NCBI GenBank assembly: GCA_037447605.1
Contig: CM074817.1
Coordinates: 1,054,001 to 1,118,000, forward strand
Direction: 5' to 3'
Source: Zygnema circumcarinatum SAG 698-1b
Taxonomy: Eukaryota; Plantae; Zygnematophyceae
DNA: 64,000 nucleotides
The position numbers were made by a program, and so were the translations under genes. The notes beneath the pieces were generated by a model. That model saw nothing but the letters and a program-made list of their open reading frames with translations. It searched no databases and was not told the origin of the DNA. This document shows positions 4,774-30,628 of this stretch, piece by piece (position 1 is the first letter of the stretch; each line of letters starts with the position of its first letter).

Positions 4774-13905
<9,132 letters not shown>

Positions 13906-21537: not shown

Positions 21538-24500
21538 TCACACCTTCTTCAATACTCCCGCCTTCCCTTGCCGCACCTCATAACTGTGCTCCACCACAAG
21601 GGGAGTCTCTATAGAAACTGGCCTTTCAGGCGACCAGAGCTCCAAGTTGCAGAAGGGTACACCCCCCCCCCCTCCTCCTCCCCAATACACGAGGCACATC
21701 TGAACCTCCTCCAAGCTGAAGTGGTTAACCAACTCCCATCCGCTCTCTTTATCCACCAGCGCCCACTCCCCTGCCAGAGATCAAGAGTCCCCCCTTACCC
21801 ACACTTTTCAATCCGAGCTGTCGAAGCTATACTAGCGATGGAATTTAGGTTTTTTCAGCGTTTTCCGGCTAGAAAATATGTCATCCATCTTCAGTATTGC
21901 AGCCTCTCTTAACAACTTAAATATCTGAGATTGAGCTCTGTGTCTCTCACCGTTAGGTCGGTCCCGCCCCTTCAAAACCGCCTCTCCGGACTCAGGCACA
22001 ATCTCCCTCGGGCTCCCATCCACGGCTCTAAAGCGCACTGCCATATGGGACGGATTGACCAGTTTGAAGGAGGGATGAACCCTTAGACAGACCAATCTGC
22101 AGCTCGCTCTCACATTTCCATTAGCTCCGTCATGTCATGCATTTTTTAGAACAGAATCTATCTGATAAAGTTTAGGATACTATTCTCACATAGACTCTAT
22201 CTCCAGACGTCATGTCATGACTGATCTTTTCCCTTGTGGGAGAAGACGATTCCAACAGGTTCGTTTCCAGAAGTTCATGAGATTTTCGATGGGTGAAAAG
22301 TTGAACCCCACCTAGAGAAACCGCCGGAACCTGCTCCCACTGACTTTGCAACAATGGAAGATCGAATCACAACTTTGTGAACGGCTTCGCTCGGTATCGC
22401 AATCCGGCGAAGCATGGCAAGTCCCCCCCCAATCTCTCCCTCCATTGTCACAGATTCCTCTCCCTCCATCTGCTTCAGCTCCCTCCTGCATTCCTCAACA
22501 AAGAGACATCCCACAAACACTGAAGGGAAGCCTAACAGACCCCTTCTTCCATTCAGAACATCGATAAGGAAAAACACAAAAGAATGAAAAGAGCAACAGA
22601 AATGCAAGCATCCAGTCTTATACCATCTATCCTCCATATCATCTACCGTCGTGTCTATATCAACTATGCCTTACATTGCAAGTGGAAGAGAAGTGAAGGG
22701 GTGTACCCAAGAACTGAGTATGGCTCAGAGGCACCGGCTGACCGGTACTCGGTTCCGCTGTACTCCTCATAGCCTCCCTCTCCCACTCTGCTCTCCAACA
22801 GCTCACACTCTGCTCCCACCTCCCCCTCCCTCCCGTATTAAAGATACGATGCCCCTCCTCATTAACCATCTGAGGAATTCGGGAAAAGCCTAAACATCAC
22901 AAATGGGTGCATCTGCTGCTCTTCTCTGCACAAGCGAGAAATAAAGAAACGGGCACAGCAAAGTGACTGTTTTATTGCTCGTTTGAAAAGAAGCCCAATC
23001 TTTTCAGCACCCATTTCAAAAAGAGGAAGTTTCCTTCTTTCTTATCCACTTTACCCGTGGAACTGTGAGTCATGGATATGATCCTCCCCCCGCAAAAAGG
23101 AGCAATTTTGAGCTCCCACTCTCCTCCCTTCAGCTCTATGGGCACATGGCTTGTTTCTCGTCCTTTGTGGCTTGCATCTTGCTCGATATCTTCTTGCAGC
23201 CTTCCTACTATTTTGTGCACAGAAAAAAAAGGAAAAAAACGAGAAGAGGGGGCAGAATTTATCAGTTTATTTATTTTTAACTATGTGAATGGGGGCATAC
23301 TCTCTAAAGCATTTTTTTTCAAAATTGTTCGCAGCACTGAGCTGAGTGCTGACCTGGGACGGGCTTCACTCTTTTCTTGGCTTCTAAAGCCATAATTTCA
23401 ATCTCCTTTTCTGAAGGAAGTTTTAATAGCACAGGCAGCCCGTCAACTCCAGATCCCTCCACCTGCCATTGAACTAAACGAGTTAAGTCCATAAAGCATA
23501 ATTAGACTTTTAAAAATGCGTCGGTTTATCTAAGAAAAGAGTCCCTCATTGTTGAATGCCTTTTTTTTTCCTAAAGTTTAATAAGAGTTTGTTTGAAACA
23601 TGTCAACACAGTAAAAAAGACGAAGGAAAAAGGGAGGTAAAACCTGAACATAATCCGCAAGCAATAGTCGAACATGGAGAGAGCGTTTTGGCCTTGGTCG
23701 GTCTCCCTCCTCCCTCTCAACTTCCACAATAACACTGTCTCCTTCTCGACTCGCCTTATAGTGGGAGAGGAGGTAGTCCCCATTGAGATAGCCATAGCCA
23801 TCACCTTCATCTTCAAAGAGAATGCCTTTAGCACCACCTGCTTATTAAGGAAAAAGTAGAAGACAAAGGAGGAGGAGGAGGAGGAGGAGGAGTGTGATGA
23901 TAATGCAATTGATGTGTTCTTGATTTCTCAATTCCTCTCATGTTGATTAAATCCAATAAAATTTCAAGAATAGGAGAACTTTCAGTTCGTACCCGAGGCA
24001 TCAAGGGCTACCAGAAGTGTAACTGTATCCTCGGGTTCTATGTCTTCCACACTTTGTAGGATGGGACCGGATGGGACTATCCCTCCCCCTTGAAGAAATA
24101 GCAAGGGCAAATCCTGCATCACATGTCCAAATCAAATTCATCAAATTACCAATATTTTTTGAAATATGTTTCACAACGAGAACATTACAAGCAGTTTGTA
24201 GATACTGCACGCTCCCACGAAAGATGACCAATGAATTTGTTACCGGGTGAGAATCGTCGAAATCGAACCGTCGCCAAACTCCGGTCGGGAGAGTGACAGC
24301 TGTCCACGGCTCGAGATCACGGTCCTTTGCCGTCCTGCAGTTCACCTCTTTTCTTATATGAACAAGGGAATGACTAACTTGTAGTCATAAAACAATCAAC
24401 ATGAACAAGATTTGCAACACATAAGCAATTAACCTAGTTAGCTATGTCTATGATGCCGTGCATAGAACGAACGGCGTCAGAGGTCTACCCACATGTTAAA

Positions 24501-27500
24501 GTAAAGGGATATTGTTTATGTAAACAGCCTGCCTATTATTTGAAGTGATGCTTAAAGAAAACAGTACGAACGCATGTTTTGATGTTAAGCAACTTACGAG
24601 CAAGAAACGAGAAGTGGGCCCAACAAGAAGGAGTCCTCTATTCCCCTGAGCTTTGAATCTTTGGGATCTACACGTGTCAACATTCACAAATTCAGCTCCG
24701 GTTGATGGGTATCTGCTCTATTCTCATTTTATGCAGTATAGGTTCAATAAAAGGAAAAAAGCCCCTCACTTCTAAAAGTGAAAATGAGAAGTACTTCAAA
24801 CATATAGTACGGACCAAAGATATAGCAGCGAATACGAAAAACATGGTACCTTCCAATAAACAACAAACCCCCCATATATTCTGTCGAAATTTCACTGTAA
24901 GGAAGGGCTAAAAGACGGGTTTTTTATCACCTGCAAAGAAGATAGGAGTCATTACAGGGAGGCCCTTCCTGTGGCTTAAATAAAAGAGGGTATAGAAATG
25001 TCGCAACAGCCGATATCGCCTCTCCAGAGCAAGCCGGCAGACGCGTTCACACTGCTCAGAGAATATGAAAAAAAAAAAAGGGAGCCCCCAAATATGACAA
25101 TCCTTCCTCTTCCTCTCCCACTATTCGGCCTTCCAGAACGAGCAGAACATTCCATACGGCATCCCATCCATCCATTCATCCATCCATCCCACCCATGTTT
25201 CCCGACTCAGAACAAAAAAGAAAAAAAAAATTGGAATCCCTTAGCAACCTATGAACCCAATAACAACCGAACCCAATAACAACCGTACCCAACCCTTCCA
25301 AGAAGTGCTCCAAGTACTGCAAAGTGGGTCCGTTTACCTCCGCCCCAAAGGACCACGGCTCGTGATCTCTCGTGCCCGTTTCCGAGTGGCCCCGCGAGAA
25401 AGGAAGAAGGGCGCCGAGGCCCATCCACCGCGCGAAGAGCTTCGGGGAACTGTCGCCGGCGAACCCGCCGATGTCGGGCCCGCAGAAGGGCTGCGCGCTC
25501 AGGCTCTGAAGGGGGGAGAGGAGGGGTTTGGTTGGGGGATGGGAGAGAGAGGAAGAGAGAGAGAGAGAGAGGGAGAGAGTGAAGGGGGGAGAGGAGGGCT
25601 TTGGTGGGGGGATGGGAGAGAGAGGAAGCGAGAGAGAGAGAGAGGGAGAGTGTGTGAAGGGGGGAGAGGAGGGCTTTGGTGGGGGGATGGGAGAGAGAGG
25701 AAGCGAGAGAGAGAGAGAGAGAGAGTGAAGGGGGGAGAGGAGGGTTTTGGTAGGGGGATGGGAGAGAGGAAGAAAGAGAGAGAGCGAGAGAGTGTGAAGG
25801 GGGGAGAGGAGGGTTTTGGTAGGGAGATGGGAGAGAGAGGACGAGCGATAGAGAACGAGAGAGTGAAGGGGGGAGAGGAGGGTTGTGGTAGGGGGATGGG
25901 AGAGAGAGGAGAGAGAGAGAAAGAGAGAGAGAGGAGAAAGAGTGTAGGTGGTGGGTATGTATGTACGTGAAATTTATGTGAACTATCAAATAAGCCGAGA
26001 GAGGAGAAATTCGTGTATGTATGTATGCATGTAGGTATGCATGTATGTGTGTATGTATGTGTGAATTTATGTGAAGTATCATGTGAGTTGCAACTTAAAA
26101 AGAGGAAGGATCACTTCGACCTGAAGGAAGATCAAAGCGGGGAGTAGGCTTTTGTGAATCAGCATGGTTTTTCTGGAGTAAGGATTTGGAGATGTTGCTA
26201 CAGGCGTTGTGCAGGATACCCCCCTTTCTTTTTCACATTTTAAGGAGGAAAAAAGAAACAGTCCTGAATCAGAAGTGGTGTATAAACATGGTGCAACCTT
26301 TAGCCTCTCCTTGTGCAACTTAAGCAGGAAACAAGCGCAGTACTAACCAGATTGAGAGCCATAGGAATGCTAAAGTGAAGGTGCTCCCAGGTGGCCAAAT
26401 TGTCTCCAGTCCACGTGGCAGCATATCTGTGGCTGCCGATGTATCCCGCACGTGTGAGTACAAATGGGCGCTTTTCCGGTTTTGCCGCCTTGATGCCCTC
26501 CCATGTGGATCGCGCCATTAGCATTCCGTACACCTGAACAGGGTTCAGCACCACCCCACACGTGTGGAAAGGTAGCAATTAGCAAAAGCTCAGAAGATGC
26601 GAAATTTCAAGGAATGGATTTTTTCAAGGTGCTGCCATAGGACAAATGCTTCGGTTGATGTTGATTTCAAAAGGGAAAAGGAGGCTCGTTTGGAGGTAAG
26701 AGTCCTTACATTGTGGTAGTGGAGGTGACTTTGTGTGCCCCCAAGTTCCTCATCCCCTCTGTGCACATTGGTTTCGGGCATTGTCTTCGTTACGGTCTGC
26801 GGCGAAGAAGCGACCAGTAACCATTTTTTAGTCAGCTAAACCTGCTAACATGATCGCTTTTGTGAAATGAAAACAAAACTGGAAAAACCCGCGTAACCAA
26901 ACAAGCACATACTAGTAGATTTTTGTACATAGTTGGTTAGCTAAGTTAGTGCTCTAGTAAGTTAGTATATAACTAAGTGTAAAAAGCATATTTTGGGGTT
27001 GTATTTGAGTCATTCCTATTCGCTCACATTGAAGACGGCTGGTTCATTCATGTCGTTCCAAATCCCATCCACGCCTTGTAAAGTAAAGTCCCTAATGAGA
27101 GCCGCCCACCATCTCCTTGTGCTCTCCTTGGTAAAGTCAGGAAATCGGCACGCTCCGGGCCATACATTGCCTGCGAGAGCCTCCCTAAGTTAGACTACCC
27201 ATTATTTGGGTTTGATTTTACACATGAAAAAACTGCCACCTGTCAACTGCACTTCAATTTTTTCCATTTCTAAGGACTATCAACTGAATGTGAGAGCATG
27301 AAGTTGTAACTGACTACCTGTGAAAGGCTTTCCGTTGGCCTTTTGCACCCAGACATCGGCCTTATTGCCGGAGTCATAAACAAAGTAACCGGACTCTTCT
27401 TTTATTCCGGGATCAATCATCCACACTGCTTTGAAGTTCAGCTTGTGGAGCTCATCTGCCAGGCCCTTTGGATTTGGAAACTTCACCTGCATAGGCATCA

Positions 27501-30500
27501 TTAGCCCGTGAGATCGTGACTCGGAGAAAGAAAGTCACAAGCGGGTAGTTGGAAAGCATCATACTGAGAGAGAGAGAAAGGAAGAGAAAATGAGGAACAC
27601 AGAGAGAGAGAGAATGAAGAAAGAGAGAGAGAGAGAGAGAACATATTATAAAAAAAGCTCGTGAACAATGTTGTGCGGGAGGCAGAGACTGCAGTTTTGC
27701 ACTGACCGGGTCAAAAGTGAAGCAGCGAAAGCCCTCCATATAGTCAATGTCCATCCATATGACGTCACATGGAATCTTCTTTTCCCTAAATGTGGCTGCT
27801 ACCTGCAATGAACATGCAGATCTAAAGGGCTCCAGTCACTGTTAAACTTTTGGTTACCTATGGTTTAACTTAGGCAGTTTACTCTCCGTCCCCTGACTAA
27901 GAAGCATTGCTGATAGATGGAGGTACGTTCCCCTTATCAGAGAACTTGACACCGCTTATCAACAGCTACCACAGATTTTCAGCCCTTGTAAAAGTTCAGG
28001 CAATGAATATACACACATATAAAAGCGTCTGCTATGGATGAAGTCTTTGCTATAACCTTCACTTTTTTTTTCGTTACCCTTTAGCTGAACAATTATGGAG
28101 GTCAAAGCAGAAAATCCTCAGGTTGGAGATGCACCGATAGGGAGAGTTCAACAAATTTGGGGAAGCGAGGGAGAGGGTGGAGAGGAGGGGTGGGATAATA
28201 GAGCTTGAAGATGAGATGAATACCTCCACAACTCTAAGGGAAGGCTCATAGCTAAAGCGGCACTGGTGGTAGCCTAGAGCCCATGCGGGAGGCATTCCTA
28301 TCTTACCTGAATCCATGCCCAACAAATTGCCCATACCAACCCTTAGATGCTAGAGTCCATATATGAACCAACTGGTCAGGCATGTGTTGGACGAATAGTA
28401 TCACGGGAACAGATACATGGACCTACTGGTGAAAAGCTGTGATCTAAATTCACTCCTTTGTTCAGTCACGTACATAAGGGTACATCTACCACTTTGTGCA
28501 GTCACCCATGTAAACGTAATTTTACCACTATGTATGTATATTTATGTCTATGTTCTGAGGTTTGAAATGCTCCTACCCACCTTCTGCACGTACTCTGCAG
28601 GCTCATAGCTCCAGCGACATTGGTGGTAGCCTAGGGCCCAAACTGGGGGCATTTCCATGCGGCCTGCAGCCCGTCAACGAGCGGTATCCCACAAGCCTGC
28701 GCTACGCTAAACTGTTTCGATGCGAGCCTAAGGGAAAAGGGCCGAATTTTCATTATATTGGCCCATCTTCAGACGCGTTCCGAAGTCTTCTAGAGAATTG
28801 AATCAGCTTGTGATTCCAGAGCATGTGATCTATTTACTTTGGATAGCGGTTAATCGCGGTTCATTAATCGTTATCGTACGTGAGACTTCGACTCGAGGTG
28901 GATCATTCTGACTCGTGTCTTGCAATCGACTTTAGAGGTTGAATTTAATCAGCTAAGAAGTGCATATACTTTGCTCTTGTGCATATGCATTCACAGAGGG
29001 GCCGAAAGTAGGTCGAATCCGTACGAATCTGCTCACCTATAGCATTAGAAAGCACAGCAAGCACTTCATGAGGTGTCCGAAATGGTCCGAATGCGACAAT
29101 GGGAAAGTGTGCTGCTGCCACAAACTTGATGCTGCTTGCTTTCCGAAGATCGATCTATCCCAGCATGCCACAGAGACAATGCAAAAGATATATGGCATGT
29201 CATATGGCGAGAAAGATCGACTAGAAGCATAGTTCGTTTACTAATTAGTCTCCCATCTCCGTAGCTTATCAAGCAAATTTTTTTTTACTAAAACTTGGAG
29301 CAAAAGGATATTTCAAGAAAATGGATAAGCATACAGATACTGAAACTTGTAGCAGGTAGGCAATACTATTGAATTTCTTTTATTATGACTGACCTCACAT
29401 CTGCGAGTGGTATCGGCCAAAAGGCCGATACAGGCCCCATCCGGAAGAACTGCCAATACCCAAGGATGGGACTGGTACAGAGAGGAGGTGCTGCTGCTAT
29501 AGCCCCATGCATCCGTGTTCCATGTGAAGCACTGTAAAAAGAAAAAAATTGCCTATATGAGATGCTGCTCAAAGTCAATTTGCAGCCTATCTGGCAATCC
29601 GTAAAGTTTTAAGTAACAAACTGCAAAAAAAATTCCAAACGTGTCTGCTTCTCGAGAAAGGTATTGGAATGAATGGCTAGATGGTCCATATGGTCCTGGA
29701 TATGGCGGAAGGGAGAGGGGAGCTAAGAGGGAGAGGAAAGAGTGAGGAGAGACGAGAAGAGAGAAAACGGGGAGGGGAGAGCAGAGACTAGAGGAGAGGA
29801 GTGAGGTGGAGTTAGAGACAGGCAAGAGGAAAGAAACTGCATACAAATCGCCGCTATAACATAGGAGGCAGACCTATAATATAAAGAAACCTGAAAAAAT
29901 ACTCACCCTCCGGCCTGTACGTTCCAAACTTCCGCTCACTTCCCCAGTGCCATAAAATGAGGTGCCTTCTGGAAACTGCATTGCAACAAGAAGAGGAAAA
30001 AAGGGCATAAGATAGTCTATAACTTCCAGAACGCAAACAGCCAAAGGAAGTTGGTGATGTTAAGGTACATTGTAGCATTTGCATTTGAAACTCCAGAAGC
30101 TAAAGTGAACACATATTCCAGCGGACAGATCACAGATCTACATCGAATTATTAGCTCCTAAAAACCACTTTTGGCAACCTTCTGATACATGGTGTCGCCA
30201 CAGCTGAACTTTGACAATCTTTTTGGTGCAACAAACCTTCACTAATGATTCCGTCCAAGAACAAACAAGAGACAAAAGGACCTCCAGTTCCAAACTCACC
30301 CCAAGTTACAACTGGTATGATGCAGACATCCTGATCACTACATTAAAATGCGATGAAACTCCCAGTTTCAACCTTTTGAGTACATACGCATCCGTACACT
30401 TACCTCAATAACCACAGTCTGCAATCCACTCTCAATTCGACATTTGGCACGAGAGAGCTCCTTTCCCAAATCCGCTCCATTTGCACCATGAAGCTCCGCC

Positions 30501-30628
30501 TCCCTCTTGCTGGGCTCCACGAATGAAAGGGACGGGCAGGCGAGCTTTCGGGCAGCCTCGCTCGCATCGAGGCGATGCACTCCTGCTTGCAGGACAGCCA
30601 TGGCCGCCATGTTCTTTGCGGGAGCCAT
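21538..30628 (-). CDS. GH31 alpha-glucosidase, plant heteroglycan glucosidase 1 (HGL1/AGL2)-like, ~22 exons
   Basis: Exons include 30404-30628, 29907-29975 (FPEGTSFYGTGEVSG), 29394-29531 (FTWNTDAWGY..LYQSHPW), 29037-29154, 27707-27802 (DVIWMDIDYM), 27318-27486 and 27028-27170 (GIWNDMNEP, catalytic nucleophile). Also ~26347-26534 (RPFVLTRAGYIGSHRYAATWTGDN, acid/base), ~25331-25505 (GPDIGGF..RGHSE) and 21538-21770 (NLELWSPERPVS..EHSYEV). The start Met is inferred and may lie further upstream. Confidence 0.93.
25500..25950 (+). repeat. ~62-bp GA-rich intronic minisatellite, ~7 units (GTGAAGGGGGGAGAGGAGGG.TTTGGT.GGGG.ATGGGAGAGAG..)
   Basis: Visible tandem units inside a GH31 intron. Confidence 0.85.
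28224..28306 (-). CDS. GH31 alternative exon 5b (G)KIGMPPAWALGYHQCRFSYEPSLRVVE
   Basis: 83 nt; acceptor ..GGATTCAG, donor GAG|GTATTC; phase 1 to phase 0; no stops. Confidence 0.85.
28581..28663 (-). CDS. GH31 alternative exon 5a (G)RMEMPPVWALGYHQCRWSYEPAEYVQK
   Basis: 83 nt; acceptor ..GGGCTGCAG, donor AAG|GTGGGT; phase 1 to phase 0; paralogous to 28224-28306; not annotated in the ORF track. Confidence 0.85.

Follow-up and report, generated by a model that had tools for sequence, protein, structure and literature searches.

A glycoside hydrolase family 31 (GH31) alpha-glucosidase gene of the streptophyte alga Zygnema circumcarinatum SAG 698-1b quite probably contains an alternative exon pair of the mutually exclusive type. 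The window analyzed here is a stretch of 64,000 nucleotides (nt) from contig CM074817.1 (assembly GCA_037447605.1, positions 1,054,001 to 1,118,000 of the forward strand), in which the gene, of the type called HGL1 or "alpha-glucosidase 2," is encoded on the minus strand; all coordinates below are those of the window unless another contig is named. Two neighboring exons of this gene, designated A and B, are tandem-duplicated homologs of equal length and phase, both with an open frame. They code for alternative versions of the same short protein segment, with Trp at one position in A (the W form) and Phe in B (the F form). Productive messages with A only and with B only both exist among contigs assembled from public RNA runs, and the exclusion is leaky. 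The degree of confidence given above covers the exon pair itself; the further step, to a difference in linkage preference between two enzymes, is graded separately below.

On the minus strand, both exons begin with the bases that finish a split Gly codon (phase 1) and close with a complete codon; they are bounded by AG and GT and include no stops, exactly as a preliminary description of this DNA, made from its letters, had them: two paralogous 83-nt exons with the same phases. The twins are identical at 56 of their 83 bases, and repeat detection flags them independently as a 73-nt direct repeat with 77% identity, 357 nt apart. The same procedure found no repeat comparable to the twins in the flanking introns, and no third copy of the exon was found within the window by tblastn. 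The peptides are compared over 28 residues (27 coded entirely by the twin, plus the shared Gly whose codon is split over the junction), of which 18 are identical and 10 differ. The differences are concentrated outside an 18-residue core, MPPxWALGYHQCRxSYEP, noticed earlier for its conservation and for the contrast of CR-W-SY with CR-F-SY within it. Sixteen of the core residues are indeed shared, with only V/A and W/F differing, and seven core codons differ synonymously. Exon A has its Trp codon, TGG, at 28613-28611, and exon B has its Phe codon, TTT, at 28256-28254.

Keeping both twins or neither breaks the reading frame, as 83 nt do not divide evenly into codons. The first letters of exon B, GTAAGATAG, translate in phase 0 as V-R-stop, and inclusion of A and B together leads to this reading as exon B starts. 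The stop two codons into B agrees with the earlier expectation that joint inclusion would shift the frame. Skipping of both exons shifts the frame into stops as well.

Nine public sequencing runs of the same organism were found, of which four, from three studies (X1, X2, X3, and X5), were used and mapped to positions 27200-29600. The data come as Logan contigs with a likeness of 99% or more throughout, which can be taken as RNA because spliced joints are present in them. The depths given in brackets are contig word depths, not read counts; rare variants are dropped from such contigs, and several of the joints have only 25-30 nt on their shorter side. All four joints that had been proposed as a check on the pair (29037-28663, 28581-27802, 29037-28306, and 28224-27802) are present at the contig level. 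The upstream exon is joined to A (29037>28663) in X1, X2, and X5, and directly to B, with A skipped (29037>28306), in X2 (37.6), X3 (18), and X5 (34.9). On the other side, B is joined to the downstream exon (28224>27802) in X1, X2, X3, and X5 (29.5 in the last), and A is joined to it with B skipped (28581>27802) in X5 only (20.7). Both joints of a B-only message, the F form, are found in X2, X3, and X5, and both joints of an A-only message, the W form, in X5 only, again at the level of contigs. The joint expected from skipping of both twins (29037>27802) is absent from the contigs of the four runs. With A-only and B-only joints both present, it is not the case that only one of the exons is ever spliced in. 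A further joint, 28581>28306, connects A to B in X1, within a contig of 3023 nt, and in X3. The earlier claim of mutually exclusive splicing thus stands insofar as A-only and B-only joints both occur in RNA, and fails insofar as A+B joints occur in X1 and X3; exclusion is probably a matter of the protein level only. The exons and introns concerned are listed in Table 1.

Table 1. Features of the HGL1-type gene around the twin exons, in window coordinates
Feature	Position	Strand	Description	Basis
GH31 alpha-glucosidase gene, HGL1 / "alpha-glucosidase 2" type	21574..30610	-	approximate extent, first to last homology-supported exon	tblastn of full-length homologs
Exon two upstream of the twins	29394..29532	-	contains SHPWVLAV...ADTTRRCE	RNA contig pieces and joint 29394>29154, 4/4 runs
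Constitutive exon directly 5' of the twins	29037..29154	-	118 nt, phase 1 end, donor TAG/gtgagc	RNA contig pieces, 4/4 runs
Exon A, W form	28581..28663	-	83 nt, core ...GYHQCRWSYEP..., acceptor ctgcag/G, donor AAG/gtgggt	sequence and RNA joints
Intron separating the twins	28307..28580	-	274 nt; spliced out in A+B messages, retained in some contigs	joint 28581>28306 (X1, X3); retention in X1, X2, X3, X5
Exon B, F form	28224..28306	-	83 nt, core ...GYHQCRFSYEP..., acceptor ttcag/G, donor GAG/gtattc	sequence and RNA joints
Constitutive exon directly 3' of the twins	27707..27802	-	VAATFREKKIPCDVIWMDIDYM...; PF01055 positions 27-58	RNA contigs
Next exon further downstream	27317..27486	-		joint 27707>27486, 4/4 runs

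Several aspects of the RNA data weigh against a switch between two products. Exclusion is not strict, with A+B messages in two of the four runs; in X1 the one long contig holds both exons. Support for the A-only message comes from one run (X5) and from short bubble contigs that extend 26-27 nt past the joint on its shorter side, and in X2 the contig on which the upstream exon is joined to A retains the intron between A and B. Given the long A+B contig of X1 and this retention in X2, the W form may be a minor message. The ratio of the isoforms is not readable from contig depths, which count words rather than reads. Both isoform proteins are presumably made.

These same observations could mean that exon A serves regulation, as a poison exon. 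The F form, from B only, would then be the sole productive enzyme, A+B messages would be degraded, thereby lowering expression, and A-only messages would be splicing noise. Such a role would account for A+B joints in half of the runs and in the one long contig of X1, for the stop two codons into B, for B-only joints that are deeper in X2, X3, and X5, and for a joint from A to the downstream exon in one run only. Coding capacity is not required of a poison exon, but A has retained an open frame along with 16 of the 18 core residues and, at the critical site, the Trp that is used there by the land plants checked. Its joint to the downstream exon in X5, with a depth of 20.7 versus 29.5 for that of B, is above trace level, and Klebsormidium, too, has kept an intact W exon of equal length next to its F exon (see below). 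On balance a poison exon seems improbable here.

The intron following exon B has a peculiarity of its own in one library. In X2 the contig over positions 27803-28223 has a depth of 41, compared to about 79 for the adjacent exons, which suggests marked retention or pre-mRNA in that library.

Divergence at third codon positions with a conserved core had been taken to suggest selection on both twins, and the numbers bear this out. By the Nei-Gojobori method, the proportion of synonymous differences (pS) between A and B is 0.54-0.57, the proportion of nonsynonymous differences (pN) 0.26, and the ratio of nonsynonymous to synonymous substitution (dN/dS) about 0.3, contrary to neutral evolution of one copy. 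In a neutral simulation (20,000 runs) one copy was allowed to drift for half of the observed synonymous distance. The simulated copy was stop-free with 10 or fewer amino-acid changes in 0.1% of runs (P ~0.001), and in none of the 20,000 did it keep the core with two or fewer changes (P < 5e-5). Because of this ratio and the failure of neutral drift in the simulation, both twins are considered to be under purifying selection as coding sequence in this genome. The twin in Klebsormidium DNA and that deduced from Spirogloea gene models, both described below, make selection on both exons very likely.

This also bears on the possibility that one twin is a decaying duplicate and that the joints are splicing noise or artifacts of de Bruijn contig assembly. 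Several joints do rest on contigs with 25-30 nt on one side, and Logan contigs can thread paths through bubbles. However, the contigs are all at least 99% alike, the joints coincide exactly with AG/GT sites and are found repeatedly in runs of three studies, and neutral decay is rejected both by the simulation and by conservation of the twin in other algae. Decay with artifactual joints is thus a most improbable explanation.

The identity of the enzyme is apparent from homology. Full-length relatives map to about 20 exons in the window by tblastn. Five of the exon translations are above the cut-off for PF01055, the GH31 catalytic TIM-barrel, with E values from 5e-10 to 2e-22, and one matches PF13802, an N-terminal mutarotase-like domain. 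In the GH31 motif regions, exon translations read GIWNDMNEPAVF and AATWTGDNLATW, the motifs of the catalytic nucleophile and the acid/base (WxDMNE and the TGDN region); the constitutive exon just downstream of the twins presumably carries the Asp that matches D404 of GAA, by residue count in the GAA sequence. The closest named full-length matches are heteroglycan glucosidase 1 and alpha-glucosidase 2, and identity to plant and algal HGL1 orthologs is about 57-63% over the stretches aligned by BLAST. Nothing closer than about 63% BLAST identity was found in searches with a profile (homologs plus exon pieces) and with transcript P0254, in which the lists were dominated by angiosperms. In a maximum-likelihood tree the window protein is placed within the streptophyte HGL1 clade with support of 99/98, at a polytomy at the streptophyte base, with P0254 (68% identical in the tree alignment) and Spirogloea as nearest rows. 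These comparisons identify the gene as encoding an HGL1-type GH31 alpha-glucosidase and its host as a streptophyte alga, not a land plant. HGL1 has been described as a plant group with its nearest non-plant relatives among bacteria (PMC3087550), which fits the finding of bacterial-looking metagenome homologs 45-48% identical to the window protein. No report on the substrate or biochemistry of HGL1 turned up in the literature searched. Elsewhere in the gene, long CT-rich, microsatellite-like stretches occur in introns (25500-26100 and 27600-27680, minus strand), where translation as SLSLPP... gives rise to long spurious open frames.

The proposed course of events is as follows. Each productive message would retain one of the two 83-nt twins, and the two resulting enzymes would be distinguished by 10 of the 28 residues that make up a stretch where the catalytic barrel begins. 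One of these would be the aromatic lining subsite -1/+1 of the pocket, at the position of Trp376 in GAA, for which exon A supplies Trp and exon B Phe. The one-or-other outcome is best explained by the frame, because both exons or neither give an early stop. A message with both, stopping two codons into B, would presumably be cleared by nonsense-mediated decay, as expected for such transcripts, and decay rather than a strict block to splicing would ensure that the protein carries one twin or the other.

Within the window, neither a regulator of splicing nor RNA pairings in competition nor a steric block came to light. Candidates for pairing of the docking/selector kind amounted to short AT-rich inverted repeats (for example, 28003-28019 with 28529-28545) and are not counted as evidence. 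U12-type sites, for which the donor consensus is RTATCCTT, were rejected as an exclusion mechanism, the donors here (GTGAGC, GTGGGT, and GTATTC) being different from it. Steric exclusion in the window is ruled out by the 274-nt intron together with the A+B joints. The start of exon B, ttcag/GTAAGA, contains AG/GTAAG, a motif of the recursive-splice type, which may have arisen by chance given the Gly-Lys codons. Joining of exon A or of the upstream exon to B would rebuild a strong donor (AAG/GTAAGA) in a recursive-like manner, and it might be speculated that this regenerated donor could turn A+B intermediates into A-only messages. In addition, this stretch at the start of exon B (28298-28310, minus strand) has a second acceptor, atag/G, 9 nt inside the exon, which would lead to an in-frame loss of three residues. 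Use of either the regenerated donor or the atag/G acceptor was not seen in the RNA contigs of the four runs.

The residue that differs between the core sequences is at a position of some renown in GH31. Trp in N-terminal sucrase-isomaltase versus Tyr in N-terminal maltase-glucoamylase has been tied to preference for alpha-1,6 versus alpha-1,4 linkages, and a W-to-Y swap in a gut-bacterial GH31 reportedly shifted specificity. The human pair resembles the algal one in having an aromatic swap at the same active-site position in otherwise similar GH31 domains; there, W and Y are found in separate duplicated domains or genes, whereas in the alga W and F are in alternative exons of one gene. For GAA and N-terminal maltase-glucoamylase, the equivalence of the positions given in the preliminary description is confirmed by alignment. 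When 34 residues translated through exon B are aligned with full-length human GAA, they match residues 362-380 with no gaps and the Phe falls at 376; the same Phe is opposite the Tyr in HLSRYDY of N-terminal maltase-glucoamylase. Among solved structures the best match is 5djw, a protein annotated as bacterial alpha-glucosidase II, in which CRFSY occurs naturally. In a crystal structure of GAA, W376 makes hydrophobic contacts with ligands in subsite -1 and tilts upon binding (PMC5653652), and it is among the GAA ligand contacts listed elsewhere (PMC7357040).

The use of this site in the family at large was surveyed from 221 site matches in HGL1-type proteins from family searches: W occupies the site in 203 of them, F in 10, and Y in 8. 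Land-plant HGL1 proteins with F or Y include four from Papaver (P0354, P0357, P0358, and P0380) and one each from Smallanthus (P0383), Nymphaea (P0374), Adiantum (P0373), and Actinidia (P0288). In Papaver, Smallanthus, and Nymphaea the F or Y versions are in separate paralogous genes on other contigs, and apart from this site their exon peptides match the W version completely or almost so. A degenerate HQCRFSYE pattern was found in four metagenome contigs, none of them algal: three carry intron-free, bacterial-looking full-length homologs with a guanine-plus-cytosine (GC) content of 65-68%, and the fourth has only a 13-residue match. The metagenome contig Ga0070726_10000026 (L009) encodes at 5038-5121 part of an intron-free, bacterial-looking GH31 homolog, 48% identical to the window protein, which agrees with the W exon of Klebsormidium at 24 of 28 residues, yet has F at the site.

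This interchange of W, F, and Y on near-identical backgrounds, in recent angiosperm paralogs as well as in bacteria, tells against a functional switch, and because of it the W/F change may be of little effect. Both isoforms could then be made but be functionally equivalent, the twin having been kept by neutral subfunctionalization, for example in different expression contexts. Alternation among close paralogs in three angiosperm genera and the F of the bacterial homolog are what this would predict, and W, F, and Y are all bulky aromatics able to stack on a sugar ring. On the other hand, it is specifically a W/F contrast that recurs in all three algae with a twin, and the Trp/Tyr difference mentioned above separates the specificities of N-terminal sucrase-isomaltase and maltase-glucoamylase, as the W-to-Y swap is said to do in the gut bacterium. 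Functional equivalence is accordingly a serious possibility, though one with less than an even chance. Repeated toggling at the site would fit tuning of the pocket and tolerance of any large aromatic equally well. That the W/F swap alters substrate or linkage preference can be suggested only tentatively, by analogy, as somewhat doubtful but well worth entertaining.

The search of related genomes that had been recommended turned up a W/F twin in the DNA of Klebsormidium and, by way of gene models, in Spirogloea. Klebsormidium nitens (L003, DF237268.1) has exons at 2701-2783 (F, CRFSY) and 2850-2932 (W, CRWSY), both 83 nt, open, and bounded by AG/GT. The gene model, GAQ86902.1, uses the F exon only, and the W exon is unannotated. 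These twins are just 66 nt apart, compared to roughly 230-630 nt for the eight other introns measurable from tblastn segment boundaries, and the short spacer may block joint inclusion; steric exclusion is thus possible in this alga.

For Spirogloea muscicola there are three homeologous models, one with W (P0353) and two with F (P0011 and P0316). They are nearly identical wherever all three are aligned, save for one divergent stretch of P0353, and in the twin exon 13 of 27 residues differ. Models P0011 and P0316 have a short spurious N-terminus right before this exon, with everything upstream missing. The truncation is probably a failure of gene prediction due to the twin exons. The simplest reading of the models would be that the two exons are present in every homeolog, with W upstream of F; the minimal one is that both exon types existed in the Spirogloea lineage.

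Among bryophytes, Marchantia paleacea, Sphagnum balticum, and Physcomitrium patens each have one W exon with the same 83-nt boundaries, and a second copy was not found in these three loci. The annotated proteins of Mesotaenium and Mesostigma have W at the site. In Closterium, strains NIES-68 and Naga37s-1 have one complete F exon, followed directly by an incomplete tandem copy that repeats its 3' part almost unchanged (L004 4299-4343 and L008 2792-2851, respectively), and in which the start of the intron is repeated too. The partial copy of Naga37s-1, at 60 nt, would give an in-frame insert of 20 residues if spliced in.

Two histories of the pair can be considered. From the present distribution we infer that it is older than the split of these algal lineages, and that the F copy was lost in land plants. 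The alternative is repeated independent exon duplication. The 27-residue exons fail to sort into W and F groups in a matrix of residue identities; only the W exons of Spirogloea, Klebsormidium, and land plants look mutually closer, at 20-21 of 26 residues. Silent sites are saturated both between species and between the Klebsormidium twins (pS 0.66-0.77). The order of the twins is W-F in the window and F-W in Klebsormidium, and in Closterium the exon is evidently prone to partial tandem duplication. Along with the lack of sorting, these points make repeated duplication a possible alternative to one old origin. As to the breadth of the comparison, the W exon of Klebsormidium is known here from DNA only, and the Spirogloea twin comes from gene models rather than DNA. 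One old origin, if true, would mean that both exons have been retained since before these algal classes diverged; repeated origin, if true, would mean convergence upon the same W/F contrast.

The most far-reaching version of the exon-pair reading would combine age with function. It would have an ancient splicing switch of catalytic specificity, predating the split of Klebsormidiophyceae from Zygnematophyceae and the land-plant lineage, by which one gene gives two alpha-glucosidases of different linkage preference (e.g., alpha-1,4 versus alpha-1,6 or alpha-1,3), lost towards the land plants and partly rebuilt there by gene duplication as F/Y paralogs. Taken as a whole, this scenario is rather unlikely.

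Mutually exclusive tandem-duplicated exons are familiar from animals, for instance exons 9 and 10 of the pyruvate kinase gene PKM, and tropomyosin. The pair in the window is like these in consisting of neighboring exons that are homologous and agree in length and phase, only one of them being kept per productive message, by which a functional segment is swapped, and in that joint inclusion is out of frame and nonsense-mediated decay expected. Unlike them, it is hosted by a streptophyte alga and has a leaky exclusion, as seen from the A+B joints. To our knowledge, such pairs are little documented in streptophyte algae, and checked cases are scarce in the green lineage. A search of full-text literature found no report linking mutually exclusive exons to this enzyme, and among the matches listed there was no paper combining mutually exclusive exons with streptophyte algae. 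This is a real and apparently unreported case of a known kind of alternative splicing. As the second exon was missed or mishandled in the gene models of both Klebsormidium and Spirogloea, such pairs are probably under-annotated in algal genomes.

The pair has RNA support and a clear structural target, the aromatic of the sugar-binding pocket, and its distribution is informative, with twins in widely diverged streptophyte algae and none in the bryophytes checked. The alga and the land plants share an orthologous family (At3g23640, heteroglycan glucosidase 1, in the latter) and, with Marchantia, Sphagnum, and Physcomitrium, the 83-nt exon boundaries. Unlike the alga, the land plants checked have one exon, of the W type, and F or Y occurs there in separate paralogous genes on other contigs, as in Papaver, Smallanthus, and Nymphaea. 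Since land-plant paralogs vary at the same residue, the system could be used to ask whether splicing and gene duplication are interchangeable routes of diversification. It may also serve for asking at what age of the plant lineage regulated switching of exons arose, and what HGL1 does.

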